From assembly GCA_025594325.1 (NCBI GenBank), contig JANHCV010000005.1, positions 868,001 through 932,000 of the forward strand: DNA of 64,000 nt, written 5' to 3'. This document shows, one piece after another, positions 18,668 to 60,300 of the stretch. Below the pieces are notes generated by a model, which ran no database searches, was not told the DNA's origin, and saw nothing but the letters and a program-made list of their open reading frames with translations. The translations under genes and the position numbers were made by a program. Numbering within the stretch: position 1 is the stretch's first letter; every line of letters starts with the position of its first letter. This DNA comes from Blastocladiella emersonii ATCC 22665 (taxonomy: Eukaryota > Fungi > Blastocladiomycota).

Positions 18668-18716
18668 CGTGATGACACTTGCGTGAGCGGCGACCCGCAA
18701 CGCGCCGTCCGCGCCA

Positions 18717-30979: not shown

Positions 30980-31122
30980 ATGATGTGGTTTCGTGCGAGA
31001 GCGAGTGGAGTGATTTCTAGTGTGCCTCATTTTCAATCTGTCAACGTTTTGTTACCCTCACCCACGCTGATTTCGCGTCTCGATGCGAACGTCATGAGCC
31101 GAACCTCCAAACGCGTCGAGAA

Positions 31123-34100
31123 CGCGAGACATGGGAGACGCGTCGCGGTCACGCGGGTGATCAGCTGATGTTCGGCTCTGATCCGCTATAAATCTCGGCG
31201 GATCGCCCCGCCCACCCCTCGCTCTCTCTGACCCTAAAGGAGAGATGCAACTAGCAGCATAAAAGGCGAACGTACGGAGCACGACTCGTTGCTCGCACCC
31301 GTCACTGCCCTTTGGGAAGGTCCTCGAACCCCGATGTCCTGCGCGCCTTGAGCGAGAGCTCAGGCGCGCTCCTCTTGCAGAGGCCCGTCTGTTCCTCGGC
31401 CGTCGGCCTCCTCTCGAGGGGACTGATGCGGAACACGGGTGGACGTGTGGCACCAGCAAGTCGGTCGCTGTCCACGACGACAGTGAAAGCGGCCACAGCG
31501 GGGACATTCTATTCAGTGCAATATGCTGCAGCGCCGCCCCCTCGCGGCGGCGCGCACTCAATGCGGACTATTGTTGCGTCTCTCCCCTCTCTCCCTTGCT
31601 ACTTTGTGTTGTCGTGCTGCCCGGATCGAGGGACGTGTTGCTTGTTTCTATTGAGCGTGTGCGTTGAGGGCGAGTGGCTGAGTGGGCGGCTGGGGGAACA
31701 TGTTGCTGCCACCACGACCGTCCCCCTTCTCTCCTCCCATTGTCAACGCCCGTCACCAAACGCAATGTGTAACCTCATGCAACCTGAGGAACCGGGCCCG
31801 CCCATACGCGTTCTTGCGGATTTACCCCCCGAGCTGCTCATCGACGTGGTCCGACTCTGCAAGCCGCGCAGCTCGCTTGCTGCGGCGACTACCGTTCTTG
31901 GCAGCACGACGCGCGACGACCTCGTCTGGCACTCGTGGGTGCTGCGCCTGATTGCGCGCCTCGACGCTGCCACAGCAGGCCCACACCAACCGATCGGACT
32001 TGTCGCGCGGTTGTTCCACCTTGGTCCTCCCGCCGCACCTGACAAGCTCATCTTCCGGTACGCCAGCTTGCTTTGTCGTCGCATTCGCACCAGCGGCGTG
32101 GACGCAGCCCAGCTCCAAGCTCTCGCCGAGCAAGACCCCCTCACCTTGGCTGCCCTGCCGCCCTTGTGCCATCCCGGCCTTGGCTATCTGCGCCTCATGT
32201 TGGCAGCCATCAAGGACGGCCGTTTGGACCTATTTCGCAGCATGTTCCTGGCGCTCGCTGCTCATGCCCCGCAAGTTCTTGGCGTTGTGATGGATCGGAG
32301 CCACTGGGCATCGTTCATGGGCGCAAGTCACTGCAGGGAATTTGGTGCAAGTATCGCCAGCAGCACCACATCTGGGTCTGTCGCCGAGGCCGTTCCATGG
32401 GACAAGGCACTCATGATTGACGCTCTCGCGTTCACCGCCATCGGCGATTTGCGCTACTTGGCGCTCCAAACCCTGCTTTTGTACGACGGAGCTCACCGCG
32501 TATACGTTCCTCAACTGCTCGCAATCGTTGGCGAGATTCCTTCGATGTACTTGCAGGCTCACGGGCGCGAGGAAGATCACGCGGCCATGTTTGCATGGCT
32601 TTACGAAAGTTTGCCGCTTATGCCGCAATCTGCGCACGCGTCATACGTCAGTGCTGCTCTTAGACATTGTGGCCATCGCTGCGTTCTCCAACAGCTGCGA
32701 CAGCTTCCCAAGCTCATCGTTCCTGCCCTGCCGCTTCAACCTTGCATGTTCAGCAACTTTCATGGCTTTTGCAGTCAGATTATTCGCCGGTTTGATGACG
32801 ATTTACCGGTTAGCGAGCTCGAGCTTCTTGACCGCGACGGTTACATTCAAACTGAGGCCTGCAGCCATATCGTTGGTGCTGCAATTGCACGTGGGGAGGG
32901 TGCGTTTGTGGCCAAGCTTTGGAAGCAACGCGACGAGCCAACGTGGCGCGCGCTCTTGCTTGAAGGTACTGAGCTGCCCGGCACTACGTGATAAAAGTTT
33001 TCCACCGTGCTCACCCATGCTGTGCCGTGTAGCACATTCCTCAGCACATTCTTCACCATGTCGCCTCACAATCCGCCAACAATGATGGCGCCAGCCATCA
33101 ACATGCATGCCAGTTGAGCCCGCTCAACCTCAAAGAATTTGGAAGAGTCTACCTCAAGGCTATTTGGCCCGGCTCCAGTCCCACTCGGTGGTCCGTTGCC
33201 CATTGCTTGCTTGAGGGCGATTTTGTTGCCCATCCGCTGGACTTGCTGCACATGTTTGTCCTCTGACACAAAGTTGACCCGGTGATCAAACACGGCTTCG
33301 CTTTGGAAGCACCTATTCACCGAAAGCTCACTGTAGACGTCGTGCGTTTAGTTGTCGCCACAATCGCAAATCCAGACACTCGAATTGCCACCATAACCAC
33401 AATACTGCAAGCCAAGCGGCAGTCCGCGCTTCTTACCGCCATGCTTGCAGTTTTCATGTCGCCAGAGGGCATGAAAACAAGTGCTTGTCATTCCGCCGCG
33501 TGGCTTCTTCCTGGACTTGACACTTGCGCCAACTGCCCGCTGCTCGCTCAGCAGGCGTGGTGGGATACGGTGGCCGTGCTTGCTGCAGAGGTTCAAGAGA
33601 TCGCGTTATATGGTGCCATGCCAGAGTGGTTGCTCCTGTGCGGATTCGTGGACACTGCGCGCTTGTGCGACTCCCGCTTTGGCTGCGACGCATTCGCTTC
33701 AGCTCAGCAAATCGCGCACATCTACTTTGGCACACAAGTGGCCTCTCCCGCGGACCTGATATCTGGCGAAATTTGATACTTGCCCTACCTCGACTCGTCA
33801 ACGATCTGGCAGCTCCTTCCTGACGGCGCGCTTGACAATGGCCTCTCACCGCTTATGCTGGCACTATTGGTCAATAGGACAGCTCACACGCGTGAAGTTG
33901 ACGTCTCCATCATGGTGGCCATGGCCAAGCACTGTGCTCCGCAGACGGTCATGTCCGCCGAGTTTGTCGCGGCACTGGAAGATAGTGACGCTGGATGATG
34001 GCTTCCGATCTATACATTTGCATCCCTTTGTGCCTCCTCAAGCTTCCCGAACAGACAGGCTGTTGCGCAAAGCTGAGGTTAGTACTCGTGTCAGCGGTCT

Positions 34101-36723
34101 GTTGGGCGGCCAACGCGCCAATCAACCCTGCATACCACGTCTCTCTGACATTGTATTGCGGTTGTCACACTTGCTGCCTCATGTGATAGCTCTCCGCCGC
34201 TAGTTGATCACATTAACACGTGGGTCGCACAGCCTTGCGTGTTAACTACTGAGCTGCCCGCATCGTGGGCACGTTGCTGATTCTTGTCTTTTCATGATCA
34301 TTGGCCCGGCCCCGGCGCAGTCGCGCGTCGTTTATGCGCAAGGGCGGTCACGACGGGTGGCGTCGGCGCCACTCGACAAGCGTCTCGACCTCGACGGCGA
34401 TCTGTTGCTCTCTTGCACCCCACTCCTAACAAACACCGCCATGTTAAACTCCATGCAACGTGCTCCTCCGGAGCTTAACCTTGCGAATTTCCCTCCTGAA
34501 GTGCTCGCCGAGGTGATCCGGCTCAGCGAGCCCCGTCGCGCTCTCGCGCCCTCCTCGGCCATCTTGCTCAGCGCAGCGCGAGACGACTTTGTCCGGCTCC
34601 TGTGGGCTCGCCGTGTGGTGGTGCAACTCAGCACCATCGTTGCGGGGCTACCGCCTCCAGATATGCCAGTCGTTTACAACCATCAGTTCGGCCAAGAACC
34701 CAAGTGGCCAAGTAACGACCTTGTCACGCACCTGTTCAAAACCGATCCCAACGACTCATCCACCCTTTCAGCGGCCCCGTGGTCCCTCGACCACAACTTC
34801 AACTCGAGCGGCTTACTGGTCCAGTTTACGGATCATCTGCTTCGCCACATTCGAGCGAGTGACGTGCAAGCCGATGCCCTTGTGGTCCAACTTAACCGCA
34901 ATGGTGGCAAATCGCACGCGTTGCGTCACCCTCTCGTAGCCTACCTCCACCTATTGGTCGCCGCAATTAGCTATGGTCGGGCTGACTTGTTCCACAACAT
35001 GCTCACCAAGCTCACAACCAAGTTTCCACACGCTCTCGACCTCTCGCTTCGTCCAGCCGACTGGGTACGGCTTCTCTACGACAAGCAAAACCCGAAATCT
35101 ACGCGGTACAAAGTCTGCAGCAAGCTTGGCCCCTTCGCGCACCCGGATTTTGTTGCCGGACTGCCGGACGTGCTAGCTCTTGTCGCCATCTTAAATTGGC
35201 GCGTCCCGCTGCTCGAGACCTTGCTGGCTGACGACGCCCATCCTATTGACACTGCTGCGCTTACCCGCTGCATGAGCGACCAGCAGTCTATCTACATTTT
35301 GCACCAACGCATGGACCTGTGCGAGCCCGAGCAGCTCAATGAGCAATTGGCCTTGTTTAAATGGCTGTTTGCGAGATTGGAGCACATGATGGAACCGGCA
35401 CGTAAAGCTTACGTGGCAGTCTCGCTCGAGCGGCGCATGTTTCGCCAGGTGATCCCGCTTCTGCAGCAGTTTCCACAGCACTTTTCGTGGGCCACGTCGC
35501 TTGACCCTCGCAACGTGGATGAGCTTCACGTTCTCGGGCGCTGCATTATTCGATGGTTCTATGACGATTTGTCACTACGCGAGCTTGATCTCCTTGACCG
35601 TCAAGGCTATGTGCAACCGTCGGCACATGCATCTCTCCTTGGCGCAGCGATTGCGCGAGGCGAACGTTCCCTGGTGCGCAAGTTTCGAGCGCTGCACGAC
35701 GACCAGGGTTGGGCTGCGCTCTTACTCGCTGGTACGAGTCTGACCTGTTGATCCGTACGCACCGTAACCGTCAAAGCTAATCGTGGCCATGCTGGTAGCC
35801 TTTGACCAAAGTCTCCATGCTCTGCAAGATGGACTTCCGCAGCGGATTCTTCACTTCGTGTCTACCAACGGCCGGACGGAAAACTCTCAAACTGCGCGCC
35901 GCTTGACACTGGACGCTTTGGTCGCATTTGCAAACGTTTATATCAAGCACGAATTCATGTGTGCTCTTCACACGAACGGGTTACTCAGCGGAAATTTTAT
36001 TGCTCATCCGCTTGACCTGCTTTATATGGTCGTCGGTCGCAGCAGATGCACGCAGACACCCATCATTTCGTGCGATGTTCGTGAAAACATTGAACGCCTG
36101 CTTGTGGTTACCATCGCAGACCCCAATACGCGAGACGAGGCAATGCACTTGATTCGAGAGGCAGAGCTTCAGACGCTACTTTTCACGGCGCTCCTTCCGG
36201 CTCGCGACCAGGACAAACTTTACCAAAACCTCTTTGCTTCTGCTTCAACCACACACGGAGCATCAACTTTGGAGCCGAGTGCCCCGTGCCCACTATTCGC
36301 TCAGCAGGCTTGGCGCGATGTAGCAGCCATTTTTGCAGCTGAACCGTTGGACGGCCCCACCTGCACCGCGGTTCAGGTATGGGGATCGATGGCGACCATG
36401 GTAGCGACCCCATGCGGTTGCAATTCCGACCTGGGCTGCGATTCTCTGGCGTCGGCTCTGCAGTGCGCGCAGATCTTGCTTGACCTTGACCCAACCGACG
36501 CGATTGCCTGCTTCTGCTATGAAGTCTTTGGCTCTTTTGCGCACGAAATACCGCTCACAGTCTGGCAGCTTATTCCCGAAGGTTTACTCGATGGTGCTGT
36601 CCCGCCTTACAGCTTGGCGAATTATGCCGTTCGCGCTGCTGCGCGGGAGAACATGGAGGTGTCCAACGTCGTGGCCATGCTTGCACGAGCCGCTCCCCTA
36701 GCGGTCACCTCAACCGAGTTCAC
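31123..36723 (+). repeat. Left arm of a 5,601-bp apparently identical inverted duplication
   Basis: Every ORF mirrors one in 54700-60300, with coordinate sums equal to 91423 and identical translations. The junctions were read by eye. Confidence 0.97.
31765..33998 (+). pseudogene. F-box-like/helical-repeat family member (long type); intact ~400-aa first exon, disrupted second exon
   Basis: LADLPPELLIDVVRLCKPR; donor G|GTACTG at 32966. The downstream frame is homologous to the 34441 gene (GDFVAHPLDLL, ANPDTR, CPLLAQQAW) but carries a frameshift and TGA at 33264 and 33774. Confidence 0.75.
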
Positions 36724-36742
36724 TGCGGTTTTGAACGCGTGA
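34441..36742 (+). CDS. F-box-like/helical-repeat family protein (long type, ~745 aa); exons 34441-35731, 35799-36742
   Basis: LANFPPEVLAEVIRLSEPR...DFVRLLW. A phase-1 67-nt intron (GTACGA..GCTAAT..TAG) joins the two ORFs in frame. LLVAAISYGRADLF and LLGAAIARGE are ankyrin-like. Confidence 0.8.
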
Positions 36743-36827
36743 ATCTCCTTTTGACTTTGTTTTCTTTCAATTCTTCCGATTTGCCCCACCATGTTCCGCA
36801 GCCCGCACCATTGGAAGCGTCGGTTTA

Positions 36828-36850
36828 TCACGTGAGTGGCGCAACGCGTC
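36828..36850 (-). promoter_or_regulatory. Composite ACGCGT + CACGTG motif, copy 3
   Basis: TCACGTGAGTGGCGCAACGCGTC is identical to the copy at 54570-54592 although the flanks have diverged. Confidence 0.5.
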
Positions 36851-37148
36851 CTACCACGATCTGCGGGCGGCCGTTTCATCATGGCAATGGTGACATGAAT
36901 AGATTTGCTGTGAAAGACTAGTTGTTTTGAGAAGTTCGCGGGAGCAGCGATTAGGTATCTCACGAAACCGACGCTATAGCGCGACGCGTCTCGCAACGTT
37001 TTCGGCGACGCGTTTTTGTCTCTCTTGACATCTGCACGCTTTTGATAGTTATAAATATCAAACGAGTCAGTTGTTTCTGCCTCGAAAACATCAAATTCGG
37101 CACCCCGCCGACCCTAGCGGGACAACGGGCTTGAGCTGCTTGGCGCAC

Positions 37149-38888
37149 TCATTCGTCGCGCGACTCACGCCTGTACCTGGCGATCGAGTTTCGGACCCAT
37201 GCAGCGTCCCGCACAGATTCCAACGCAAAGTTTGGAACATCGCGCCAAAAGCCGGTCGTTATCGAATAACGGTCCCTCGTGGAGGTACGCTCAGTGTAGA
37301 TGTAGGACGAAAGAGTGCCCATGAGTGCGGGTATTTCGCCCTTGCTCAAGTACTCGAGCGCAAATGCGATGACGGACCGAGGACTGGCCAGGCCGTGCTT
37401 TTGCGCTACCAGGCAAATGGCGAAAGCTACATGTCGGTCATTGCTTAGCGATCGAACTCGATCAAGTTTTGGCCGCGTACCGTCGAGAACAATATCTTTG
37501 AGTTGAGGGCCCGCACGCGCAGCTAGCTTGGTGCCAAAATCGATGTGGGTGCAATCATCGGTTTTGCTGAGCTCGCACACCAGGACAAAAGTGAGCGGGT
37601 TGATGTCAAGCGGTTTGCTGGCCTCGATTACACTAATCGGGTCCAAACCGTGGCGCGTGAACGCAAAAAGGTGTGCGTAGCCATCTGGGGTCAAGTATTC
37701 GGACAGGATATTGCTTGGGTGGTGGTTCAAGATGCTGGTAAGCGCGACGGACATGTGTCGCTGGACAAGCAGAGAGCGAAGTCCTGCCCGGAGCATCATG
37801 TCCGCCGTTGAGGGCGAAATCGTGTACAGCCAGTCGAGCAAGCGCGACACATTCGTGGCAGTTGCGGCAGACTTGGGAAAGCAGTCTTTAAGTGAGCATA
37901 TTTTAGGTCTGGGATGCGACCAGGGATTCTGGAAGATATCGTAAAACTTGCTCTGGTACACGCCAAAGAGCGTAGCCGCGTCGAGCTCCAAGTTCAGTTC
38001 GCTGACGCCCTCGAGGAGTCCTGGATTCCACGCCAGCATCGACATCAGAACGAGAAAGTCGAGACAACGCAATCGTTGAGAGGTTAGGAACGTCGAGTCC
38101 GAGTACAGCGAGTCGTTTGAAGCGCGAGCAAAAGCAGGCCAGTTGGTGCGCGTGATTTGCAGGAGATCGGGCACCCGCTCGACGGTGTCGATGAGCAGGG
38201 CGCGGGCAATATCGGCGTCGCCGTGGGTGATCGCAGCGATGATGAGCTGGATATGCGAAAATCCAGGGAATCGGAAGCCCGACGGAACGCGGCGGAGGTT
38301 GGCTCGTGCTTGGTCAGTCAAAGTGCCGTAGTACATCATTGCGTCGTCACCCGCCTGCTCGCGGTCGTCGTCGTCGAGACCATGGGGAAGATCATGGATG
38401 TTGAATTGTTGGAACCTTCCGCCAGGAGGATCCGCGAGTGTTGAGAGAGGAAGCGGACTCGACGCGTTGCTCGCGCGGCAGATGACATCGAGGAGAACGG
38501 TTGAAGCGACCCGGAAAAACCGCGGGCCTGGATACGACGGCGAGCCAGGCTGGACGCGCTTGAGATACCGGTCAAGGTCGGAGAGAGGGAATTGCGCCGA
38601 GCGGTTTGTCACGTCCGAGGCCCGGGTGCGGATCCAGATGGTGAAGTACCGCCGGTTCCAGATGCGCTCCACGGCAGGGTCAGCGACGATAAGGTGAAGC
38701 TCCCGCGTAGCGACGGGGACGCAGTCGCGGGGTTCCGATAGCAGCAAGATCGCGATGAGCAGCTCGGACGGGACGTTTTGCAACTTGAACTCGCCCTCGT
38801 CGCTGCGGGCTCCCGGGTTCCTTTCATTGGATTCATGGGCGGCGGAATGCGCCAAGTTTGAATGCATGGTGGGTGTTACTCGATTCAT
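37149..38888 (-). CDS. F-box-like family protein (short type), 579 aa
   Basis: LQNVPSELLIAILLLSEPRDCVPVATRELHLIVADPAVERIW; homologous to 51187 and 52793. Confidence 0.78.
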   Translation of the reverse strand: MNRVTPTMHSNLAHSAAHESNERNPGARSDEGEFKLQNVPSELLIAILLLSEPRDCVPVATRELHLIVADPAVERIWNRRYFTIWIRTRASDVTNRSAQFPLSDLDRYLKRVQPGSPSYPGPRFFRVASTVLLDVICRASNASSPLPLSTLADPPGGRFQQFNIHDLPHGLDDDDREQAGDDAMMYYGTLTDQARANLRRVPSGFRFPGFSHIQLIIAAITHGDADIARALLIDTVERVPDLLQITRTNWPAFARASNDSLYSDSTFLTSQRLRCLDFLVLMSMLAWNPGLLEGVSELNLELDAATLFGVYQSKFYDIFQNPWSHPRPKICSLKDCFPKSAATATNVSRLLDWLYTISPSTADMMLRAGLRSLLVQRHMSVALTSILNHHPSNILSEYLTPDGYAHLFAFTRHGLDPISVIEASKPLDINPLTFVLVCELSKTDDCTHIDFGTKLAARAGPQLKDIVLDGTRPKLDRVRSLSNDRHVAFAICLVAQKHGLASPRSVIAFALEYLSKGEIPALMGTLSSYIYTERTSTRDRYSITTGFWRDVPNFALESVRDAAWVRNSIARYRRESRDE

Positions 38889-39157
38889 ATTGGCGGGGAG
38901 GAGCGGCGACGTGGGAATCTCGTCCTAAACGCGTCCCGCAGCTCACGAGATCAATCACATGATTTCCCGACGCGTCTCCGTCCCATTGTCAAGCATCTTT
39001 TATTCTCGGCAGTTGCATGCGTGTGAGTAGGTCCCTCGGATTGATCAGGCGCTGTTAAGTTAAAGCAAATATCAAAGATTGTATTTTGTGCGAGCACAAG
39101 GCTGGTAAGCGGCGTCAAGCAATGTTCTGTGTGACTCGCGCGTCGAGTGTGTTAGCC

Positions 39158-39958
39158 TTACTCAGCCGAACGCTGGAACCACTCGTCATCGCAGTGGACC
39201 TCTTCATCGAGTCCATTGTCCGGGACGAGATGCCGCAAAAGAGCAGCAGTCGGGGACCCCTCGCGGGCAGCGAAACCAACGTTGTGGACGAGGCACGCCC
39301 GAAGCAGCGAGTCGTCGGGCCTACAGTTACGCTCGGTCCAGCACTCGCGCTTGCAGCCGTCGACAAGCGTCGTTTTAGCAAACTGCGGGAGGCGAGCGAT
39401 GCCCCCGCTCATGGTCGTGAAATCGACCAACGTCGCGAACCAAGCCGCCTGGCCCGACAAGGGGCACGGGCCGCACGTGCGTTCTCCATCCGCGCCCGCG
39501 ATGAGGACCGCACGCGTGTGACATCCGCCGGCCTCGAGCTGCGCCTCGACCATGATGCCAAGGAGTTTCGGGGCGAGGCCCGCGTGCTCGCCGACTTGAC
39601 GCGTCGCGTCAGCCCGCGTGGCGGGGTTTTGGAGCGCAGCGACGAGCAATCAGTGCGCCAAGGCGTAGTTCTTACATGTCTGCTCGGGAGAGCGCGCAAT
39701 GACGGACATGGCGAGCGAGAACAGCGCCATGACGTTGTCGCTGGTGGGCTCTGAAAAGAAGGACGCGAACCGCTGCATTTGGCGATTGCTGGAATCGAGG
39801 CGGTTTGACACCGACAAGTGCGTGATCACAATGAGCAAGTCGGTCGGCACATCGCGGCGTCCAAGGTTCGGGGCTTCGCAAGCAGCCGGATCGATTTCAT
39901 AGGATTCATGTGCAGAATGCATCAAGTCTAAATTCATGGTAGTGCTCGTGCGATTCAC
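39158..39958 (-). pseudogene. Internally deleted F-box-like family member with one in-frame TGA (39650-39652)
   Basis: The N-terminus resembles 38888 (MNR..TM....HSA.HES; DVPTDLLIVI). In the same frame after the stop, ALQNPATRADA...CPLSGQAAW matches the long-type C-terminal domain. Confidence 0.75.
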
Positions 39959-40470
39959 GGTGTGCGAAACACGGGAGCGCGAGCGCTAATCGAGACGCGT
40001 CCCGCCCAAGTCCGCGTCTGTTCGCGCGTCGGTACCGGTCACCCTTGCGCCAGGGTACTCCTACCCACGCCCATACGCATACACCTACTCTGGTTAGAAC
40101 TGAGGTTGGCGCGCTTGATTCGGCGCATGACTGCCGCGACACACCGCGCTCACGACGAGAACGGGACTGGGACGCACCGCACCCTCTTTGCAGGCTACGC
40201 GGCGAGCTTCGCGTCTGCCCGATGTCAAGGTGAGATCAATTGAGATGTGGCCCGCGTGCACGACATCCAAACCGCGTACCTGAATCGCTCGGCGAGCCCG
40301 GGGTCGCTCAGCTACGAAAGTAACCTTGACGGGTGGACAGCGACAGCTATCGCTGGGCGTGCTTCACGGGCTCGAAACTGATGGGGACATGATTTTGTGT
40401 TTATAGAGACCATCTACACATTGATTTTTACAAGACCACCACACCCACTCACGCGCTCAGCCCGAAATAT

Positions 40471-41837
40471 TTACATGACCCGGTTGGGCGGGAGCTGGGG
40501 CGCGATGGGTCCGCAGGTCGCGGGGTTGACGACGCGTGGCGTCGGCGGGGGCGCGAACGACGAGATGGATCCGGAGCGGGTGCGGACCTGCTGGATACGC
40601 GAGCGGACAGCGACGCGGAAGAACGAGTCGTCGTAGGCGACCGTGAGCAGCAGGAGGATCTGGAACGTGATGATCGACAGGGGCTTGAACGTGGCGACCG
40701 CCGGGTTGTACATGTGCGTCGAGTCGGCACCGTCGTTGTCGTCGTGCGTGTGCGTCTCGTACGACTTGAACTGGAAGTAGGCCGAGGTCACGATGATCAC
40801 GGTCTGGACAACGATGCGCGGCAGGTACGAGACGAGGAGACCCTTGAGCACGACCCACGACGAGGACGACATTTGTGACGCGCTGCTCGCGTCCTTCTTG
40901 GCGCGGTACGCGCGGCGCAGCGAGACCATGAAGGACATGGCGATGCCGCAGGTCAGGATCTCGCCAACGAGGTCCATGACGATGAGGGCGAGGCCGAACG
41001 ACTCGGCGGGGATCTCGGGGGCGCAGAACTTGACGCCGCTCGGGGCCACGTCGAGGGTCGCGGTCACGGTGAGCACGTCTACGGACGGAGTTCGAAGGTT
41101 AGCCCGAGGAACGGCGCGAGGGGTACCAGTGAGAACGTACTCAGAGCGGACACGACAAAGTAACCAATGACGAACACGATGCTGATAGCCGCGACGAACG
41201 GGCGAGCCCACGGGTGCACGCCGAGCTGCTTCGGGTTGTACTTTGGCAGGAAGCGGAAGGTGCGGAGCAGGATGGTGATGAGCTTGACGGCGCCCGTCGC
41301 GTGGAACACGGTTTGCATGACCTGCGACTTGGCGGCGCAGGCAGCATCGGCGCGCTTTCCCGTCAGGGTGGCGGCTGGCGGCAGGAGGAACAGGAAGAGC
41401 GCAAAGGCGTGGGTCGCAAAGGTGAGGCAGAGCAGGATCTTGGAGATCCAGACGCACAGCGGGCGCGACGCGCGGCTGCCGGAGCCGCACGTATTGGCGA
41501 CGCTGTTGCGCGCGCGCTCGAGGTCGTTGCCCGCGCCGAGGATGGTGGTGAAGGCCGGGCGGTGCAGCGGGGTCGCGGGCGAGTCCTCGGGGTTCTCGGC
41601 ATCGTCCTTGTGGTGGCCGGCGGTGCGGTTGCGCAGTTTCAGCTTGGGCAGGGACACGGTCGGGATGACGACGCCGTTGCGGCCGAAGGCGGAGCGCCAG
41701 GCGCCGCGCAGGCAGTGGGCGCCGGCGACCAGGCCGAGCGCGAGGTATATGCCCGAGTAGCCGAGCAGGAAGGCCTGCGGGCGCGAGAGCAGGAACGGGT
41801 TGGCGAGGATCGCGTCGGCGGAGGCGGAGCTTGGCAT
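40471..41837 (-). CDS. Seven-transmembrane (GPCR-like) membrane protein; exons 41837-41141, 41078-40471
   Basis: Seven hydrophobic helices after splicing. Cys before TM3 (DAAC) and in the TM4-TM5 loop (KFCAPE). Confidence 0.7.
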
Positions 41838-46719: not shown

Positions 46720-47000
46720 GTCGTTTGTTTTGCACTATCCCATCCTTGATCGTCTCCATCACCCCCATCATCATCACATACCGTTTTTCTTGCCCCTCCT
46801 GATCCCTCGTCTCCTCTGTCCATACTTGCCGTCCCCTCTGTCCTGTCTCTGATTTGGTTCGTTTCGTTTTTCACTTGCTGCTCGCGCGCGCGGAATAAAA
46901 GTCATCGTCGATACCCTCTCCCTCGTACTCGTTGCGTTGCGTGAACAAGGTGTAGTAGTGCTAGATTAACGAATCAACAATAAAACCGCGGGCGAACTCC

Positions 47001-49153: not shown

Positions 49154-49420
49154 GGTTTTCGGGGGGCGCGGTGCGAATAGTGGTTGCGGGGGCGCTACGT
49201 CCTCGACGTCACCGTTGTTCCCAGCGTGGGTAACCGATCGCGACCGTGGCGACGGCGGCGGAGCGTGGGCTGCGTCGCGAGGTCGAGAAACTGCGATTCG
49301 CGTCAGGTGGCGTCACATGCCGCGTCGCCACCCTCGATTTTGATTCGTGTTCACCCCGCGTCTCCCTTCTCCACCCTGCCCGTCCAAGATACAGTAGCCG
49401 CGTTGCTGCGGTATTACTCG

Positions 49421-50913
49421 ATGCAATCCAATGAAGCCGGACACGCGGACTCGGATGTCCCGTCGTCCGTGACGCCGTCGGAGCAGGACGGCGTACCGCC
49501 CGTGCTTGAGGCGCGCCTCCGCGTCCTCGGGTGCACGCTGATTGACGGTGCCGGTCGATCCCTGGACCTGTACACTGTCCTTCATCTCATGTGATGTTTC
49601 CATGACCAACGCCGCCCTCGACCCCCGTCTAGCCCACAGCCGACCGTCGCGACCGCGCAGGCGCTGCTGCAACGGTTCTACTTTGTCGCCTCGCTCAAGA
49701 AGTTTGGCGTGCGGGTACGCCGATCACCAGACATCTACCGTAGCATCGAAGCTGACGCCATGGAGTCCGCGGAGGTGTAGGACATTGCGGTCGGCGCCCT
49801 GTTCCTCGCCTGCAAGCTCGAGGAGACGCCGCAGACGATCCGCAACGTCATTAACGTGTTCTACCACCACCTGCAGCTGCACAAGGGATACACGTCGCCC
49901 GCGCCCATGGACCCGAACTCGGCGGTACGCCTAGCCACGCTGCTTCCTCCGCGACGTGAGAAACTAACCCTTGGCCACCGTAGGAATTCTCGGACTGGGA
50001 GCACCGCCTGCTGCGGTCCGAAATGTACATCCTCAAGCACCTGGGCTTCCACGCGCACGTCGCGCACCCACACATCTGGGTCCTGCACTACGCGCGCGCG
50101 CTGCAGCTGCCCGCCACGCACCCGCACGTCGTCCAGACCGCGTGGAACCTGTGCAACGACAGCTTCCGCCTCCCGCTCGTCTGCTTCTACCAGCCCTACA
50201 TCCTCGCCGCCGCGTGCCTGTGGCTCGCCGCCCGCAAGCATGTCGTCCCCCTGCCCGAGACACCACACCCGTGGTACACACTGCTCGACGTCCCGCGCGA
50301 CGCCATCGACCACATTGCCGCGCAGCTCGTGCACCTCGACTCGCTCACCCTGCGCTGCGACCTCCCGCTCAAGGCCGACGATATCACGCCCGAGTGGACC
50401 GATCCCGCCACCATCGACCGCATGCTCGGCCCCGATGGCATGCAGGACGCGATCCGCGAACGCGACGCACGCCGCGAGCGACAGCGTAAGGAGCGCGAGG
50501 CTGCCGAGGCCGAGGACAAGCGCCGCGCCGCGGAAGCCGCAGCTGCTGCTGCGGCCGCTGCTGCCGAGGCTGCACGCCTGGCCGCTCAAGCTCCACCAGC
50601 GGCCGCAGCGAAACCGGTCGTCGGCCAGGACGCGTTCCGCGCCGCCCTCGAGCAGGCCCGCGCCAAGGCGGCCGAGCTGTCGCGCTCGTCGGGTCGCACG
50701 TCCTCGTCTTCCTCGTCGCGGCACCAGCGCGACTCTGGCGGCCGTGACTCGCGGTCTTCGCGCGACGATTACAGCAGTCGCGGCCGGTACCGCGATTCCT
50801 CGAGCCGCGATCGCGAGCGGGGACGCGACTACGACCGGGATCGCGACCGCGATCGTGACCGGTACCGCTCGTCGGGATCGAGTAGGGGCGGTTCCGACTA
50901 CTACCGCCGGTGA
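49421..50913 (+). CDS. Cyclin L-like protein with an RS/RD-rich tail; exons ~49421-49569, 49633-49714, 49781-49924, 49984-50913
   Basis: TPSEQDG...GCTLI..AG..L.LPQ.TVATAQALLQRFY, GALFLACKLEE, EMYILKHLGF and AWNLCNDS; RD-rich C-terminus. The start codon is uncertain. Confidence 0.88.
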
Positions 50914-51186
50914 TGGAACAGTGAAATACATGGTGCACGCGCGTCTACGTTGCCTTGAACGGCTCACCTGAGTGCGAGCTGCGTTAACATGTGCAGTGTT
51001 CGTCACCATCCAATGCAGCCTCAACTGAGCACCCACCGTGATTTTGTAAGCAGAGACTTGCTGAGAACTCATGTGATGTGAGACAACTGACAGGAGGCGT
51101 CCGGAGCTCGTCTGACTTTCGTCAGGCGCTCGCGGCCCCCGCACCAAGGGCCACAATAAAACGAAGTTCTCCGACCCTCGCACTCC

Positions 51187-52452
51187 ATGAAACGAATGAA
51201 AACTACCATGAAGCCAGCCTTGTCGCAATCGCCCAAGCACGGGCTTCCCACGACGAGCAATGACGCGAAACTCGCCCTCTGCAGCATGCCGTGCGAAGTC
51301 CTCGCCATGATCCTGCAGCTCGCAGAGCCACGCGATGTTGTACTCGTTGCAACGCGTGAGCTCAAGTGCATTGCCCTCGATCCCGCGGTGGAGCGCATCT
51401 GGAATCGGCGGCGTTTGTCCCCGTGGCTTCTCAACGGAGCGCTCGACGTGACCAACCGCTTCCCCGGCTACCCGATCACCGACCTCAACCGGTACTTTGC
51501 GCGCACCCAGCCAGGATCGCCTCATTATCCAAACCTTCGCTTCTACCGCGCTGTTTCGGCCGTCCTTCTCGAGCTCATGAGCCCGACCCGCGGGAGTCGT
51601 GCGTCCGACCCGAAGCTGCTCTCAACGTTCTTGAAACTCAAGGGCGCCAAAAACGACACACGCAAATGGGAGAAGTGGACCAGGACTGACCTCAGAAATT
51701 ACGGCTACAACGCACCTGCGTTTACCTATGACGACGACGGTGCCGAGCGGGACGGGGACGCACCAGACCGTCCCGATGTTGCTGGTATCGTTATTCGTCA
51801 CCGTCGCCGCGTGACATCGTGTCTGCGGTCTCCCGTATTCTCGCAGATTCACCTCCTCGCTGTCGTGGCCATGCAGGCCGACGCCAACACTGCGCGTTCG
51901 CTGCTCGTTGATACGCACAAGCGGGCGCCCGAGCTCCTTCAAATCACGCGGAAGAAGTGGTCGTTGGTTACTTGCCTCCCGCTTGGAACCTTGGAGTGCA
52001 AATATTACTTCTTCGAGCAAAAGTTGCGCTTGCTCGACTACCTCGTACTTGTCTCTGTTGCAGCTTGGAATCCTGGAATGCTTGAAGGACTCGGCGCTTT
52101 AGAGCAAGGCATCACCTCGGCAGAGCCCCTCGACTTGTCTGCAACGGAGTTCGAGCTCACTCACATTCTCACCGACCGCTTCCCAAAAAGTGCCGAGGGA
52201 GCCTTCAACGTTTTCCGCACGCTCGATTGGGTGTTTCACTTCGCTCCCTCGTTCGCCAAGCAGCTAGTCGATGCTGGTCTGCTCACAGCCCTCATGCAAC
52301 CGCACATGTCCGCCGCGCTCGTCCACATGCTGTGGAACCACGCTGACGAGCTGCTGGCTGGAGTAAAGCCCGAGGATCTCGCCAAGCTTGCTGGGCAGGG
52401 GTACGACAGTTGCGACTTGATTAAACGAGCGGATCGAGGCAAGGCGGCGTGA
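51187..52452 (+). CDS. F-box-like family protein (short type), 421 aa
   Basis: LCSMPCEVLAMILQLAEPRDVVLVATRELKCIALDPAVERIW; tandem paralog of the next gene. Confidence 0.75.
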   Translation: MKRMKTTMKPALSQSPKHGLPTTSNDAKLALCSMPCEVLAMILQLAEPRDVVLVATRELKCIALDPAVERIWNRRRLSPWLLNGALDVTNRFPGYPITDLNRYFARTQPGSPHYPNLRFYRAVSAVLLELMSPTRGSRASDPKLLSTFLKLKGAKNDTRKWEKWTRTDLRNYGYNAPAFTYDDDGAERDGDAPDRPDVAGIVIRHRRRVTSCLRSPVFSQIHLLAVVAMQADANTARSLLVDTHKRAPELLQITRKKWSLVTCLPLGTLECKYYFFEQKLRLLDYLVLVSVAAWNPGMLEGLGALEQGITSAEPLDLSATEFELTHILTDRFPKSAEGAFNVFRTLDWVFHFAPSFAKQLVDAGLLTALMQPHMSAALVHMLWNHADELLAGVKPEDLAKLAGQGYDSCDLIKRADRGKAA

Positions 52453-52792
52453 TTGCAAAAAACTTTGATCACGTCGCTGAGATCGTTGAATTATTGATCG
52501 CGGGATTTGTCCGAACCGAGGCGCCGTGGGCCATGTGTTTTTGCGTTGTTGGGCGATTGCCCGTCAGTTTGGCGCACAATATAATTGGTAGCTGCATCCC
52601 GGAAACATGTCTCTCCTCAGCGAGGTGCGAGACGTGCGAGAGACGCGTCAAACAATCATGTGATGGGGGACACGAATGGCAGGAGCTTTTTGGCTCGATT
52701 TTGTCCGGATTTTGTCCGTCACCCTCTCGCTCCCGCGGCCCGATAAATGCTCCAGGCAAGCGGATCCAGCCCTCTCGCACTCCACGAAACAA

Positions 52793-54037
52793 ATGCAGAC
52801 TCTCATGGATACAAACTTGCCGCAATCCGTCAGCGATGGCCTTCCAACTGCGGTCGACGATGCGAGACTCGAGCTTCGGGACGTGCCGTGCGAGCTCCTT
52901 ACCGTGATCCTGCAGCTTTCGGAGCCACGCGAGTGCCTTCATGCTTCGACGCGGGAGCTCCATGATATCGTCTCCGATCCGGAGGTCGGGCAGGTGTGGA
53001 TCCGGCGGCGCCTGAGCCTTTGGCTTCGCAAGGGGGCGTTCGACATGCCCAACCGCTTCCCTTGCTTTCCGATCACCAACCTAAACCGGTACCTCTCGCG
53101 CACCGATACGGGCTCACCACACTATCCCAGCACCCGCTTCTTTCGAGATGCTTCGAACTTGTTTCTCGAGCTCATGGCGCCCAACCACGTCAAACGCGGG
53201 CGCGGGTCGAACTCAAAGCTTCTGTCGATGTTCACCAACCCAGAGACCGCGTTCGACGTGAGCGGCTGGGAAGAGCGGACCCGGACCGACCTCAAACCGT
53301 ACGGCTACAACGCCCCAATCCGAAACTACGCCGATGACGATCACGAGCGCGATGGGGACGAGCCTAACCGTCCCGACTATTACTACTACGGGCGTCCCCG
53401 CCGCGTGACGTCGTGTCAACGTTCCCCCGTCTTCTCGCAGATTCAGCTCCTTGCTGCCGCGATCCTCCGGGCCGACGCCGACACTGTGCGTGCGCTGCTG
53501 GTTGCCACGCACGAGCGGGCGCCTCAGCTGCTCCAACTCACGCGCGACAACTGGTTCAGGGCGACTGGAATCCCTCTTGGTACCTGGCAATCCAACTTTG
53601 CCTTTTTCGTGCAAGAGTTGCGCCTGGTTGACTACCTTGTGCTCGTCTCCGTTGCAGATTGGAATCCAGGGCTGCTTGAAGGGCTCAGCGCTTTGGGGGA
53701 AAACGGCGACACCTCGAGCTTCCGCAGTTTGTCGGCAACTGATCTTGAGCTCACTCACATCCTCACCGAACGTTTGCCAAAGCTTGCCGGGGCCGTGACT
53801 CGCACGCTTGACTGGGCATTTCGCTTTGCTCCGTCACTCGGCAAGCAACTGGTCGGTGCTGGACTGCTCAAAGCTCTCATGCAACCGCACATGATCGCCA
53901 CGCTCTCGTTCATGCTCTCACACCACGCCGACGAGTTACTGGCTGAGTCAAAAGCCGAGGATCGCGCCAAGCTCAACGTCCCAGAGCGCACTGGCTCCGA
54001 GGTGATGAAACGGGCGGATCGACGTGACGTGGCATAA
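52793..54037 (+). CDS. F-box-like family protein (short type), ~414 aa
   Basis: LRDVPCELLTVILQLSEPRECLHASTRELHDIVSDPEVGQVW; collinear with 51187. Confidence 0.75.
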   Translation: MQTLMDTNLPQSVSDGLPTAVDDARLELRDVPCELLTVILQLSEPRECLHASTRELHDIVSDPEVGQVWIRRRLSLWLRKGAFDMPNRFPCFPITNLNRYLSRTDTGSPHYPSTRFFRDASNLFLELMAPNHVKRGRGSNSKLLSMFTNPETAFDVSGWEERTRTDLKPYGYNAPIRNYADDDHERDGDEPNRPDYYYYGRPRRVTSCQRSPVFSQIQLLAAAILRADADTVRALLVATHERAPQLLQLTRDNWFRATGIPLGTWQSNFAFFVQELRLVDYLVLVSVADWNPGLLEGLSALGENGDTSSFRSLSATDLELTHILTERLPKLAGAVTRTLDWAFRFAPSLGKQLVGAGLLKALMQPHMIATLSFMLSHHADELLAESKAEDRAKLNVPERTGSEVMKRADRRDVA

Positions 54038-54569
54038 TATGCAAGTTATTCGCACAACGCCGCTAGAACGACAACGTTGATTCATTCATAGCGGGGTTCA
54101 TGGGAGGGAGGCAAAGCTGTGCAGAGCGGTGAACTGGATGTGATGTCTCAGACAACGTGATAACTCGACGCGTCTTAAGGCTTCCGAATCAGGCGACAGA
54201 AAAAACGAGTGCTTGTAGTGTGACGGGGATGGCGGAAGTAGCTCGCTAGTAAAAATCAGAACAAGCTTCGAACGTCACGTACATCAAGTATCACACAACC
54301 ACGTTAGCCCGCTCGGGCCAGTAAGGCGCTGGATGTTACGTACTCGAGTTCAAATAATTGATTTGATTTGATTTTTCTGTCATTTCCTCTTAAAGCTCAC
54401 AGTCATCAACGGGAACGGTGTAGAATGCGTCGTGGGCCGCGCCTTGACCAGGCGGGTTCTGCGAGGCACCTGGTAGCGGCTCAGGCAAAGCTCTCCAAAC
54501 AGTCTTCTGTTTGTTTGACAGAACACTTTATTCACAGCATCATCACACGACAGCCGCAAACCATGGCCT

Positions 54570-54592
54570 GACGCGTTGCGCCACTCACGTGA
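54570..54592 (+). promoter_or_regulatory. Composite ACGCGT + CACGTG motif, copy 4
   Basis: GACGCGTTGCGCCACTCACGTGA. Confidence 0.5.
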
Positions 54593-54680
54593 TAGATCGA
54601 CGCGTCCGCTGGCACAGATCTTGAAACGTAGTCCAGCAAAACGGTAAACATGCAGCGAAAAGTAGACCGGAAAGCGCGCT

Positions 54681-56982
54681 TTAAACTTCGAGAAACGTGG
54701 TGAACTCGGTTGAGGTGACCGCTAGGGGAGCGGCTCGTGCAAGCATGGCCACGACGTTGGACACCTCCATGTTCTCCCGCGCAGCAGCGCGAACGGCATA
54801 ATTCGCCAAGCTGTAAGGCGGGACAGCACCATCGAGTAAACCTTCGGGAATAAGCTGCCAGACTGTGAGCGGTATTTCGTGCGCAAAAGAGCCAAAGACT
54901 TCATAGCAGAAGCAGGCAATCGCGTCGGTTGGGTCAAGGTCAAGCAAGATCTGCGCGCACTGCAGAGCCGACGCCAGAGAATCGCAGCCCAGGTCGGAAT
55001 TGCAACCGCATGGGGTCGCTACCATGGTCGCCATCGATCCCCATACCTGAACCGCGGTGCAGGTGGGGCCGTCCAACGGTTCAGCTGCAAAAATGGCTGC
55101 TACATCGCGCCAAGCCTGCTGAGCGAATAGTGGGCACGGGGCACTCGGCTCCAAAGTTGATGCTCCGTGTGTGGTTGAAGCAGAAGCAAAGAGGTTTTGG
55201 TAAAGTTTGTCCTGGTCGCGAGCCGGAAGGAGCGCCGTGAAAAGTAGCGTCTGAAGCTCTGCCTCTCGAATCAAGTGCATTGCCTCGTCTCGCGTATTGG
55301 GGTCTGCGATGGTAACCACAAGCAGGCGTTCAATGTTTTCACGAACATCGCACGAAATGATGGGTGTCTGCGTGCATCTGCTGCGACCGACGACCATATA
55401 AAGCAGGTCAAGCGGATGAGCAATAAAATTTCCGCTGAGTAACCCGTTCGTGTGAAGAGCACACATGAATTCGTGCTTGATATAAACGTTTGCAAATGCG
55501 ACCAAAGCGTCCAGTGTCAAGCGGCGCGCAGTTTGAGAGTTTTCCGTCCGGCCGTTGGTAGACACGAAGTGAAGAATCCGCTGCGGAAGTCCATCTTGCA
55601 GAGCATGGAGACTTTGGTCAAAGGCTACCAGCATGGCCACGATTAGCTTTGACGGTTACGGTGCGTACGGATCAACAGGTCAGACTCGTACCAGCGAGTA
55701 AGAGCGCAGCCCAACCCTGGTCGTCGTGCAGCGCTCGAAACTTGCGCACCAGGGAACGTTCGCCTCGCGCAATCGCTGCGCCAAGGAGAGATGCATGTGC
55801 CGACGGTTGCACATAGCCTTGACGGTCAAGGAGATCAAGCTCGCGTAGTGACAAATCGTCATAGAACCATCGAATAATGCAGCGCCCGAGAACGTGAAGC
55901 TCATCCACGTTGCGAGGGTCAAGCGACGTGGCCCACGAAAAGTGCTGTGGAAACTGCTGCAGAAGCGGGATCACCTGGCGAAACATGCGCCGCTCGAGCG
56001 AGACTGCCACGTAAGCTTTACGTGCCGGTTCCATCATGTGCTCCAATCTCGCAAACAGCCATTTAAACAAGGCCAATTGCTCATTGAGCTGCTCGGGCTC
56101 GCACAGGTCCATGCGTTGGTGCAAAATGTAGATAGACTGCTGGTCGCTCATGCAGCGGGTAAGCGCAGCAGTGTCAATAGGATGGGCGTCGTCAGCCAGC
56201 AAGGTCTCGAGCAGCGGGACGCGCCAATTTAAGATGGCGACAAGAGCTAGCACGTCCGGCAGTCCGGCAACAAAATCCGGGTGCGCGAAGGGGCCAAGCT
56301 TGCTGCAGACTTTGTACCGCGTAGATTTCGGGTTTTGCTTGTCGTAGAGAAGCCGTACCCAGTCGGCTGGACGAAGCGAGAGGTCGAGAGCGTGTGGAAA
56401 CTTGGTTGTGAGCTTGGTGAGCATGTTGTGGAACAAGTCAGCCCGACCATAGCTAATTGCGGCGACCAATAGGTGGAGGTAGGCTACGAGAGGGTGACGC
56501 AACGCGTGCGATTTGCCACCATTGCGGTTAAGTTGGACCACAAGGGCATCGGCTTGCACGTCACTCGCTCGAATGTGGCGAAGCAGATGATCCGTAAACT
56601 GGACCAGTAAGCCGCTCGAGTTGAAGTTGTGGTCGAGGGACCACGGGGCCGCTGAAAGGGTGGATGAGTCGTTGGGATCGGTTTTGAACAGGTGCGTGAC
56701 AAGGTCGTTACTTGGCCACTTGGGTTCTTGGCCGAACTGATGGTTGTAAACGACTGGCATATCTGGAGGCGGTAGCCCCGCAACGATGGTGCTGAGTTGC
56801 ACCACCACACGGCGAGCCCACAGGAGCCGGACAAAGTCGTCTCGCGCTGCGCTGAGCAAGATGGCCGAGGAGGGCGCGAGAGCGCGACGGGGCTCGCTGA
56901 GCCGGATCACCTCGGCGAGCACTTCAGGAGGGAAATTCGCAAGGTTAAGCTCCGGAGGAGCACGTTGCATGGAGTTTAACAT
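54681..56982 (-). CDS. Inverted duplicate of the 34441-36742 F-box-like gene; exons 56982-55692, 55624-54681
   Basis: Identical translation except the final residues (TTFLEV vs TAVLNA), which fall outside the identity tract. Confidence 0.8.
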
Positions 56983-59900
56983 GGCGGTGTTTGTTAGGAG
57001 TGGGGTGCAAGAGAGCAACAGATCGCCGTCGAGGTCGAGACGCTTGTCGAGTGGCGCCGACGCCACCCGTCGTGACCGCCCTTGCGCATAAACGACGCGC
57101 GACTGCGCCGGGGCCGGGCCAATGATCATGAAAAGACAAGAATCAGCAACGTGCCCACGATGCGGGCAGCTCAGTAGTTAACACGCAAGGCTGTGCGACC
57201 CACGTGTTAATGTGATCAACTAGCGGCGGAGAGCTATCACATGAGGCAGCAAGTGTGACAACCGCAATACAATGTCAGAGAGACGTGGTATGCAGGGTTG
57301 ATTGGCGCGTTGGCCGCCCAACAGACCGCTGACACGAGTACTAACCTCAGCTTTGCGCAACAGCCTGTCTGTTCGGGAAGCTTGAGGAGGCACAAAGGGA
57401 TGCAAATGTATAGATCGGAAGCCATCATCCAGCGTCACTATCTTCCAGTGCCGCGACAAACTCGGCGGACATGACCGTCTGCGGAGCACAGTGCTTGGCC
57501 ATGGCCACCATGATGGAGACGTCAACTTCACGCGTGTGAGCTGTCCTATTGACCAATAGTGCCAGCATAAGCGGTGAGAGGCCATTGTCAAGCGCGCCGT
57601 CAGGAAGGAGCTGCCAGATCGTTGACGAGTCGAGGTAGGGCAAGTATCAAATTTCGCCAGATATCAGGTCCGCGGGAGAGGCCACTTGTGTGCCAAAGTA
57701 GATGTGCGCGATTTGCTGAGCTGAAGCGAATGCGTCGCAGCCAAAGCGGGAGTCGCACAAGCGCGCAGTGTCCACGAATCCGCACAGGAGCAACCACTCT
57801 GGCATGGCACCATATAACGCGATCTCTTGAACCTCTGCAGCAAGCACGGCCACCGTATCCCACCACGCCTGCTGAGCGAGCAGCGGGCAGTTGGCGCAAG
57901 TGTCAAGTCCAGGAAGAAGCCACGCGGCGGAATGACAAGCACTTGTTTTCATGCCCTCTGGCGACATGAAAACTGCAAGCATGGCGGTAAGAAGCGCGGA
58001 CTGCCGCTTGGCTTGCAGTATTGTGGTTATGGTGGCAATTCGAGTGTCTGGATTTGCGATTGTGGCGACAACTAAACGCACGACGTCTACAGTGAGCTTT
58101 CGGTGAATAGGTGCTTCCAAAGCGAAGCCGTGTTTGATCACCGGGTCAACTTTGTGTCAGAGGACAAACATGTGCAGCAAGTCCAGCGGATGGGCAACAA
58201 AATCGCCCTCAAGCAAGCAATGGGCAACGGACCACCGAGTGGGACTGGAGCCGGGCCAAATAGCCTTGAGGTAGACTCTTCCAAATTCTTTGAGGTTGAG
58301 CGGGCTCAACTGGCATGCATGTTGATGGCTGGCGCCATCATTGTTGGCGGATTGTGAGGCGACATGGTGAAGAATGTGCTGAGGAATGTGCTACACGGCA
58401 CAGCATGGGTGAGCACGGTGGAAAACTTTTATCACGTAGTGCCGGGCAGCTCAGTACCTTCAAGCAAGAGCGCGCGCCACGTTGGCTCGTCGCGTTGCTT
58501 CCAAAGCTTGGCCACAAACGCACCCTCCCCACGTGCAATTGCAGCACCAACGATATGGCTGCAGGCCTCAGTTTGAATGTAACCGTCGCGGTCAAGAAGC
58601 TCGAGCTCGCTAACCGGTAAATCGTCATCAAACCGGCGAATAATCTGACTGCAAAAGCCATGAAAGTTGCTGAACATGCAAGGTTGAAGCGGCAGGGCAG
58701 GAACGATGAGCTTGGGAAGCTGTCGCAGCTGTTGGAGAACGCAGCGATGGCCACAATGTCTAAGAGCAGCACTGACGTATGACGCGTGCGCAGATTGCGG
58801 CATAAGCGGCAAACTTTCGTAAAGCCATGCAAACATGGCCGCGTGATCTTCCTCGCGCCCGTGAGCCTGCAAGTACATCGAAGGAATCTCGCCAACGATT
58901 GCGAGCAGTTGAGGAACGTATACGCGGTGAGCTCCGTCGTACAAAAGCAGGGTTTGGAGCGCCAAGTAGCGCAAATCGCCGATGGCGGTGAACGCGAGAG
59001 CGTCAATCATGAGTGCCTTGTCCCATGGAACGGCCTCGGCGACAGACCCAGATGTGGTGCTGCTGGCGATACTTGCACCAAATTCCCTGCAGTGACTTGC
59101 GCCCATGAACGATGCCCAGTGGCTCCGATCCATCACAACGCCAAGAACTTGCGGGGCATGAGCAGCGAGCGCCAGGAACATGCTGCGAAATAGGTCCAAA
59201 CGGCCGTCCTTGATGGCTGCCAACATGAGGCGCAGATAGCCAAGGCCGGGATGGCACAAGGGCGGCAGGGCAGCCAAGGTGAGGGGGTCTTGCTCGGCGA
59301 GAGCTTGGAGCTGGGCTGCGTCCACGCCGCTGGTGCGAATGCGACGACAAAGCAAGCTGGCGTACCGGAAGATGAGCTTGTCAGGTGCGGCGGGAGGACC
59401 AAGGTGGAACAACCGCGCGACAAGTCCGATCGGTTGGTGTGGGCCTGCTGTGGCAGCGTCGAGGCGCGCAATCAGGCGCAGCACCCACGAGTGCCAGACG
59501 AGGTCGTCGCGCGTCGTGCTGCCAAGAACGGTAGTCGCCGCAGCAAGCGAGCTGCGCGGCTTGCAGAGTCGGACCACGTCGATGAGCAGCTCGGGGGGTA
59601 AATCCGCAAGAACGCGTATGGGCGGGCCCGGTTCCTCAGGTTGCATGAGGTTACACATTGCGTTTGGTGACGGGCGTTGACAATGGGAGGAGAGAAGGGG
59701 GACGGTCGTGGTGGCAGCAACATGTTCCCCCAGCCGCCCACTCAGCCACTCGCCCTCAACGCACACGCTCAATAGAAACAAGCAACACGTCCCTCGATCC
59801 GGGCAGCACGACAACACAAAGTAGCAAGGGAGAGAGGGGAGAGACGCAACAATAGTCCGCATTGAGTGCGCGCCGCCGCGAGGGGGCGGCGCTGCAGCAT

Positions 59901-60300
59901 ATTGCACTGAATAGAATGTCCCCGCTGTGGCCGCTTTCACTGTCGTCGTGGACAGCGACCGACTTGCTGGTGCCACACGTCCACCCGTGTTCCGCATCAG
60001 TCCCCTCGAGAGGAGGCCGACGGCCGAGGAACAGACGGGCCTCTGCAAGAGGAGCGCGCCTGAGCTCTCGCTCAAGGCGCGCAGGACATCGGGGTTCGAG
60101 GACCTTCCCAAAGGGCAGTGACGGGTGCGAGCAACGAGTCGTGCTCCGTACGTTCGCCTTTTATGCTGCTAGTTGCATCTCTCCTTTAGGGTCAGAGAGA
60201 GCGAGGGGTGGGCGGGGCGATCCGCCGAGATTTATAGCGGATCAGAGCCGAACATCAGCTGATCACCCGCGTGACCGCGACGCGTCTCCCATGTCTCGCG
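54700..60300 (-). repeat. Right arm of the 5,601-bp inverted duplication
   Basis: Reverse complement of 31123-36723. Confidence 0.97.
57425..59658 (-). pseudogene. Inverted duplicate of the disrupted 31765-33998 F-box-like gene
   Basis: Same ORF fragments and the same stops as the left copy. Confidence 0.75.

Follow-up and report, generated by a model that had tools for sequence, protein, structure and literature searches.

What keeps the two arms of an inverted repeat identical to the last letter, and does such a repeat serve the cell as a switch for the DNA between them? We address this question for a palindrome of Blastocladiella emersonii ATCC 22665 that lies in a 64,000-nucleotide stretch of assembly GCA_025594325.1 (contig JANHCV010000005.1, forward strand, positions 868,001 to 932,000; hereafter the window, whose own coordinates are used below unless a contig is named). 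A preliminary description of this DNA had proposed that perfect identity is nested inside an older, diverged inverted duplication, and had left open whether conversion or an inverting recombination was at work. We find that the palindrome lies in a low-GC accessory region of its contig, C17, and is one of many in the genome. It has sharp boundaries, and the near-identical duplicates of its resident gene family are purely inverted in orientation. The reading that we hold to be probable is that of an inverted segmental duplication whose arms overlie an older mirrored arrangement and whose identity came about through intrachromosomal copying. The locus is a well-dissected case of what seems to be a genome-wide feature in an early-diverging fungus. 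New elements are a duplicated variant RNase P RNA, an arm gene that is apparently spliced, the assignment of a short conserved block to a dispersed motif, and statistics on the absence of differences and on the all-inverted orientation of the duplicates.

A repeat search of the 64-kb window returned one dominant inverted pair, 31123-36730 and 54693-60300, in which base-by-base comparison located only three mismatches (36724, 36725 and 36728). The left arm (31123-36723, + strand) and the right arm (54700-60300, − strand) are thus exact reverse complements over 5,601 bp, with 0 mismatches and 0 indels, just as had been described. Together with a single-copy spacer of 17,976 bp (36724-54699), with three short-type (S-type) family genes towards its ends and housekeeping genes between them, they form a palindrome of 29,178 bp. 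Multi-kilobase inverted arms with more than 99% identity (here 100%) around a unique spacer are what defines a sex-chromosome-type palindrome, and the arms also carry members of a multi-copy gene family (genes A and B). In a whole-genome search (32.65 Mb), the arm was present in two copies, plus one 71% paralogue about 100 kb away on C17 (locus L003) that matches the first 2.8 kb of the arm. The palindrome itself sits mid-contig, at 0.90-0.93 Mb of the 2.21 Mb of C17. On the outer side, a comparison of the flanks detected no similarity beyond 31123 and 60300, and the homology with L003 starts 61 nt within the arm. On the inner side, identity ends 19 nt ahead of the stop codon of gene B, and both open reading frames (ORFs) terminate at the mirrored position.

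The two protein-coding genes of the arm differ in their state. Gene A (31795-33980, +; mirror copy A' at 57443-59628, −) is a long-type member of the family and a pseudogene. Its exon 1 runs to 32965 and the homologous 67-nt intron (32966-33032) is retained, but the start of exon 2 carries a frameshifting deletion and in-frame TGA codons stand at 33264 and 33774; the L003 paralogue is undamaged at all three sites. These lesions are common to both arms, so the copying either postdates the decay of the gene or spread it. Gene B (34441-36742, +), also of the long type, looks intact. Its two exons (34441-35731 and 35799-36742) join in frame across a 67-nt GT..AG intron (35732-35798; GTACGAG..CTAAT..TAG, phase 1, with a CTAAT branch site), whose position and phase match those in gene A and in the L003 paralogue. 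Gene B is thus, judging from these signals, spliced rather than broken, and the disabling stops that the preliminary description saw in both arms apply to gene A (two TGA codons and a frameshift) and not to gene B, where the interruption is the intron. The last 19 nt of gene B fall outside the identical tract, and its mirror copy B' (54681-56982, −) differs in the last six codons only, with the tail TTFLEV* against TAVLNA*.

Mirror symmetry can be followed past the point at which identity ends. The two B genes end at mirrored stops (36742 and 54681), as had been noted. Farther in, a 25-nt block lies 103 nt past the left inner boundary (36826-36850, +) and 106 nt past the right one (54570-54594, −). 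This block had earlier been taken for an identical 23-bp relic; it is indeed identical, and slightly longer, but it is not a unique relic, as it belongs to a dispersed motif, CACGTGAGTGGCGCAACGCGTC, with 148 genome matches at three or fewer mismatches against 0 for the reversed control. Because independent insertions would not give the mirrored spacing of 103 and 106 nt, the two copies point to positional homology. Copies of the motif lie in the window at 36829-36850 (+), 54570-54591 (−) and 11743-11764 (−), and C18 holds others at 1761316, 1818685 and 1810151-1810188. Elsewhere the motif makes up half of a perfect palindrome of about 38 nt. Within the 230 kb examined, its 15-nt core was confined to two mirrored pairs, located no more than about 140 nt from palindrome arm limits. 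As the motif is missing after gene A and in L003, it does not mark the 3' ends of family genes in general. Next come the mirrored family genes of the spacer. S_L (37149-38888, −), an intact ORF of 579 amino acids, is convergent with B. S_R2 (52676-54037, +) is convergent with B' and mirrors the orientation of S_L, and it has a tandem duplicate in S_R1 (51187-52452, +; 77-80% identical at the DNA level). S_L shares 38-43% amino-acid identity with the S_R genes, so that the next inward genes are mirrored paralogues as earlier stated. We read the motif as a sign that an old inverted arrangement extended at least that far and has since diverged to randomness, with the arms alone perfect; the mirrored S-type genes would fit such an arrangement without proving it.

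The palindrome is not alone in the genome. Own-genome searches for equal tblastn scores returned six further pairs besides that of the window, each with its members on opposite strands of one contig. Three were checked at the DNA level: one on C15 (arms of 13,981 bp, spacer of 1.55 kb), one at a second locus of C17 (arms of 16,938 bp, spacer of 9.46 kb) and one on C18 (arms of 4,735 bp, spacer of 48 kb). No mismatch in these three is farther than 37 nt from an arm end. Pooled over the four palindromes, about 41.2 kb of arm interior contain 0 differences (upper 95% limit, 7e-5 per site); identity between ordinary family paralogues is only 71-80%. For the remaining pairs, on C20, C11 and C6, the evidence consists of their equal scores and constant coordinate sums. 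Of the family's near-identical duplicate pairs, all seven (7/7) are inverted and on the same contig, and 0 are direct, which would happen by chance once in 128. The C15, C17 and C18 palindromes resemble the one studied here in their letter-identical arm interiors, sharp limits and overall design, but they carry other cargo, and among the four checked only here do both arms encode an RNase P RNA. The C18 palindrome also shows mirrored homology of 79% just inside its arms and of 74-77% outside them; on one side a 4.7-kb insertion, located precisely at the left arm's inner limit, has shifted the inner homology.

Some further observations concern these repeats. The C18 insertion holds a 2.5-kb GC-rich repeated element (C18:1766659-1769130) that is 94.7% identical to window positions 16205-18674, and no Pfam domain was found in its ORFs. 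Pairs of identical motif variants in mirrored orientation occur on C11 (823209-827368 and 875142-879301, with constant coordinate sums), C1 (2597879/2634598 and 3260051/3284051), C5 (1134281/1157110) and C7 (146276/175949), and suggest further palindromes there. On C5, motif copies are also paired on the same strand (543273/702917 and 548217/707894), about 159.65 kb apart, which hints at a large direct duplication.

The arms also contain a gene that the preliminary description had missed. A variant nuclear RNase P RNA of the Rfam family RF00009 is encoded in each of them (31240-31584, +, starting 117 nt within the outer boundary; 59839-60183, −), and the two copies are identical. Each scores 49.2 bits, above the gathering score of 28, and covers model positions 1-301 of 301. 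The genome has one further match, the canonical copy about 100 kb away at L003 (L003:3662-3993, that is C17:1027453-1027784, −; RF00009, 59.2 bits), so that a catalytic RNA gene that is normally single-copy exists here in two types and three copies. Identity between the types is 88%, and that between their flanks 71%. Four compensatory pairs in nested helices distinguish the types, and the segments aligned to the RNase P consensus ACCAGAAA, UGGAA and AGUgCAAU are the same in both. In the P4 helix of the arm type, two pairs are altered on both strands yet still paired, and the central pair is disrupted, with U facing C at a site that is G-C in the consensus and in the L003 copy. From this pattern of substitutions, the arm RNA seems to be a second RNase P RNA that evolved as a structured molecule. 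We rejected an identity as RNase MRP RNA, as the match to RF00030 (32 bits) falls below the cut-off of 50 and the RNase P consensus segments are shared. No genome match to RNase MRP RNA rose above the Rfam cut-off with this model and prefilter, the weak matches (32 bits) being the two arm copies only. A tie between RNA polymerase III or other RNA genes and palindrome limits was likewise rejected, since the three other palindromes have no tRNA or Rfam gene.

How far the structure can be trusted depends on the assembly behind it. The genome was sequenced with PacBio HiFi reads of 10.5 kb mean length (6.37 Gb in total), assembled with the La Jolla Assembler and then treated with purge_dups, manual refinement and Pilon (PMC9730499); by arithmetic from the 6.37 Gb, coverage is about 186x. 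Neither "inverted" nor "palindrom" appears in the genome paper (PMC9730499), and no paper among those consulted links Blastocladiella to nuclear inverted repeats. Each arm end adjoins two different unique sequences, giving four distinct junctions, and this, together with the mid-contig site and arms shorter than the mean read, leads us to regard the structure as real. A contig that runs unbroken through both arms, with reads longer than the arms, also suggests one dominant orientation of the spacer in the sequenced culture. In this assembly, spacer orientation is arbitrary for any palindrome whose arms exceed the reads; at the present locus, where the arms are shorter, it can be tested.

Could one arm nevertheless not exist, or could two differing arms have been made identical by the assembler or polisher? 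We think this very improbable. A repeat edge traversed twice would yield perfect identity, and purging, manual refinement and polishing all leave room for such an error; however, the four junctions need read support, the locus lies mid-contig, the arms are shorter than the mean read, fold-back chimeras do not produce an 18-kb unique spacer full of genes, and the genome has many comparable structures, whose spacers differ (from 1.55 to 48 kb in the verified cases). A more serious alternative, although we still consider it the less likely one, is a simple young inverted duplication, for example by fork stalling and template switching, in which identity reflects youth and no conversion has taken place since. 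The arms without differences, the lack of detectable homology past the outer boundaries and of significant inner-flank homology outside the motif, and the equal perfection of the other palindromes, which is consistent with a recent burst, would all follow from it. Under it, the symmetric placement of the motif, of the stop codons and of the S genes would have to be coincidence, and many independent zero-difference duplications would demand a very recent burst; on C18, older mirrored homology flanks the perfect arms on both sides. Youth alone accounts for the present locus almost as well as copying does; it is a poorer explanation of the mirrored motif and of the C18 flanks. Under the copying reading, an old inverted duplication would have left a strongly diverged mirrored arrangement beneath the present arms, and the arms would have been rendered letter-perfect as one inverted copy served as template for the other, through long-tract gene conversion or break-induced copying, either as an ongoing process or in one recent event. 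The motif, stops and paralogues mirrored past the limit of identity and the 74-79% mirrored flanks on C18 speak for it, and they lend support to the earlier proposal of perfect identity over an older, diverged inverted arrangement. Several observations weigh against it. Zero differences provide no internal clock, and a single very young duplication looks the same here. The GC content of the arm (0.577) is below that of the spacer (0.644) and its surroundings, so GC-biased conversion leaves no sign. With the motif masked, the inner intergenic regions are not significantly alike (a local score of 21, reached by 44 of 300 shuffles), and S_L is 39% identical to a paralogue 100 kb off, near its 42-43% to S_R1 and S_R2. 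The equal-score search favours near-identical pairs, which leaves the lack of an intermediate-identity class weakly established, and both arm copy number and spacer orientation come from one assembly alone. A bolder version of the copying reading, which we put forward as speculative and on balance unlikely, is that dozens of palindromes are kept identical by efficient arm-to-arm copying as a genome-wide fungal counterpart of the Y palindromes. At this locus such copying would maintain in duplicate a second functional RNase P RNA, its catalytic P4 remodelled, and the motif, which two of the four palindromes have close to their arm limits, might show where copying begins or ends.

The remaining alternative is the one that gave the locus its first interest, namely a programmed flip-flop in which the cell inverts the 18-kb core on cue and thereby alters expression, as at the MAT locus of methylotrophic yeasts. 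It is the explanation to which we give the least credence. In its favour is the architecture alone, with about 18 kb between perfect inverted repeats, close to the 19-kb invertible region of Ogataea polymorpha (PMC5720833). Crossing-over within the arms may well invert the spacer, but we would expect the outcome to be a neutral, passive by-product, because an inversion would rebuild both junctions identically and swap only the six-codon tails of B and B'. The spacer-end ORFs are orphan family genes, and no gene for an HMG, homeodomain or alpha-box protein or another regulator was found among them; a Pfam scan of 37 window ORFs, those of the spacer included, found none of these three domains either, at the level of ORFs, where short exons could escape. 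The locus is, moreover, one of many palindromes with unrelated cargo, and one orientation seems to have dominated in the sequenced culture. A perfect 5.6-kb inverted repeat can thus invert its spacer, but we found no sign that orientation controls anything. Of the two possibilities raised earlier, the conversion or recombination alternative is supported, and the flip-flop is unlikely, since an inversion would rebuild the junctions identically and no regulator was found at the spacer ends. UTP5/WDR43, encoded in the spacer, is normally essential. Loss of the spacer by deletion, had the repeats been direct, would therefore probably be lethal, whereas its inversion would be harmless.

In O. polymorpha and Komagataella phaffii, identical inverted repeats flank an invertible segment of about 19 kb (PMC5720833, PMC6692504), and two identical inverted repeats around a segment that recombination could invert are also what we see here. 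In the yeasts, however, a MAT locus lies at each end, a centromere or telomere by one repeat silences it, and starvation induces the inversion; here, orphan family genes occupy the spacer ends, no MAT-type regulator was found there, and a single orientation is seen in a single assembly. The early comparison with methylotrophic-yeast MAT therefore holds for the architecture of identical inverted repeats around tens of kilobases and not for gene content, as mating-type genes were not found. Mammalian sex-chromosome palindromes (P1-P8 of the human Y; those of the primate and mouse X) offer a closer match, with kilobase-scale inverted arms that gene conversion from arm to arm keeps more than 99.9% identical around a unique spacer (PMC8600007, PMC8327919, 10.1101/800185). 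Like the palindrome described here, they carry members of multi-copy gene families in their arms, occur many times per genome and may have their spacers inverted as a by-product. They differ in that the present arms are shorter (5.6 kb), show 0 differences and lie on ordinary fungal chromosomes, that one cargo gene is dead in both arms, and that GC-biased conversion is without sign. The B. emersonii genome may, like the Y, lack a recombination partner, as to our knowledge no sexual cycle has been described for this species. By analogy, the structure is of a known kind that would work like the mammalian sex-chromosome palindromes, and its likeness to the Ogataea flip/flop is one of outline only.

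The genes that populate the arms and the spacer ends belong to a family of helical proteins with long and short types and a conserved phase-1 intron of 64-67 nt; its loci in the window include 12634-13869, 31795-36742, 37149-38888 and 51187-54037. An alignment of exon 1 from five members has 38 invariant columns, at 24-40% identity to gene B, and such conservation argues for real coding sequence. GC content at third codon positions (GC3) is 0.58-0.71 in family genes against 0.94-0.96 in adjacent housekeeping genes. Own-genome searches returned at least 89 genomic matches per query, clustered on C17, C16, C18, C4, C11 and other contigs. Pfam has no family for the A, B or S genes. A reading as F-box proteins (PF00646, PF12937) was not supported, as the best match among five N-termini, to F-box-like in one of them, had E=0.27, with the likeness confined to the motif LPxE(L/V)L. 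When 1.84 billion representatives were searched with a profile, 12 weak matches resulted, the best 10 of which all come from B. emersonii, and the family is, as far as the data go, restricted to this species. An AlphaFold model of gene B exon 1 is all-helical with a mean predicted local distance difference test score (pLDDT) of 70, and no fold in the PDB matched it at E≤0.001, the likeness being to generic helical repeats only. In a word search with the same exon there was no match, not even to itself, and the arm genes are absent from the annotated proteome. About a dozen family members are found among the annotated proteins, against the at least 89 genomic matches per query, a shortfall that is probably an annotation gap. 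Low-GC3, species-only families of such regions are, it appears, almost wholly absent from annotation.

The middle of the spacer is occupied by genes of other kinds. A multi-pass membrane protein is encoded at 40471-41909 (−) in at least two ORF pieces with about six to seven hydrophobic segments and no Pfam family. It is followed by a protein kinase exon at 45553-46716 (+; Pkinase, E=2e-33), by the small-subunit processome gene UTP5/WDR43 at 47004-49312 (−), in two ORF pieces with matches to Utp12 and WD40, and by a possible cyclin-like gene at 49984-50910 (+) whose match to CycT2-like_C (E=0.0085) misses the cut-off. The UTP5/WDR43 ORF matches an annotated 695-amino-acid protein of B. emersonii ATCC 22665 at 100%. 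The kinase and UTP5/WDR43 thus agree with the core genes named earlier, while the cyclin L assignment is weak and that of a seven-transmembrane protein rests on hydropathy. Outside the palindrome, an ABC transporter gene (26327-30980, +) ends about 140 nt ahead of the left arm. On the other side lies the gene of a TmcB-like TPR/PAS membrane protein (60468-62793, +), divergent from A', from which it is separated by 840 nt, 672 nt of them inside the arm. Farther to the left, an imperfect tandem array with a 26-nt period occupies three blocks at 10452-11344, just upstream of a copy of the dispersed motif and of a family gene.

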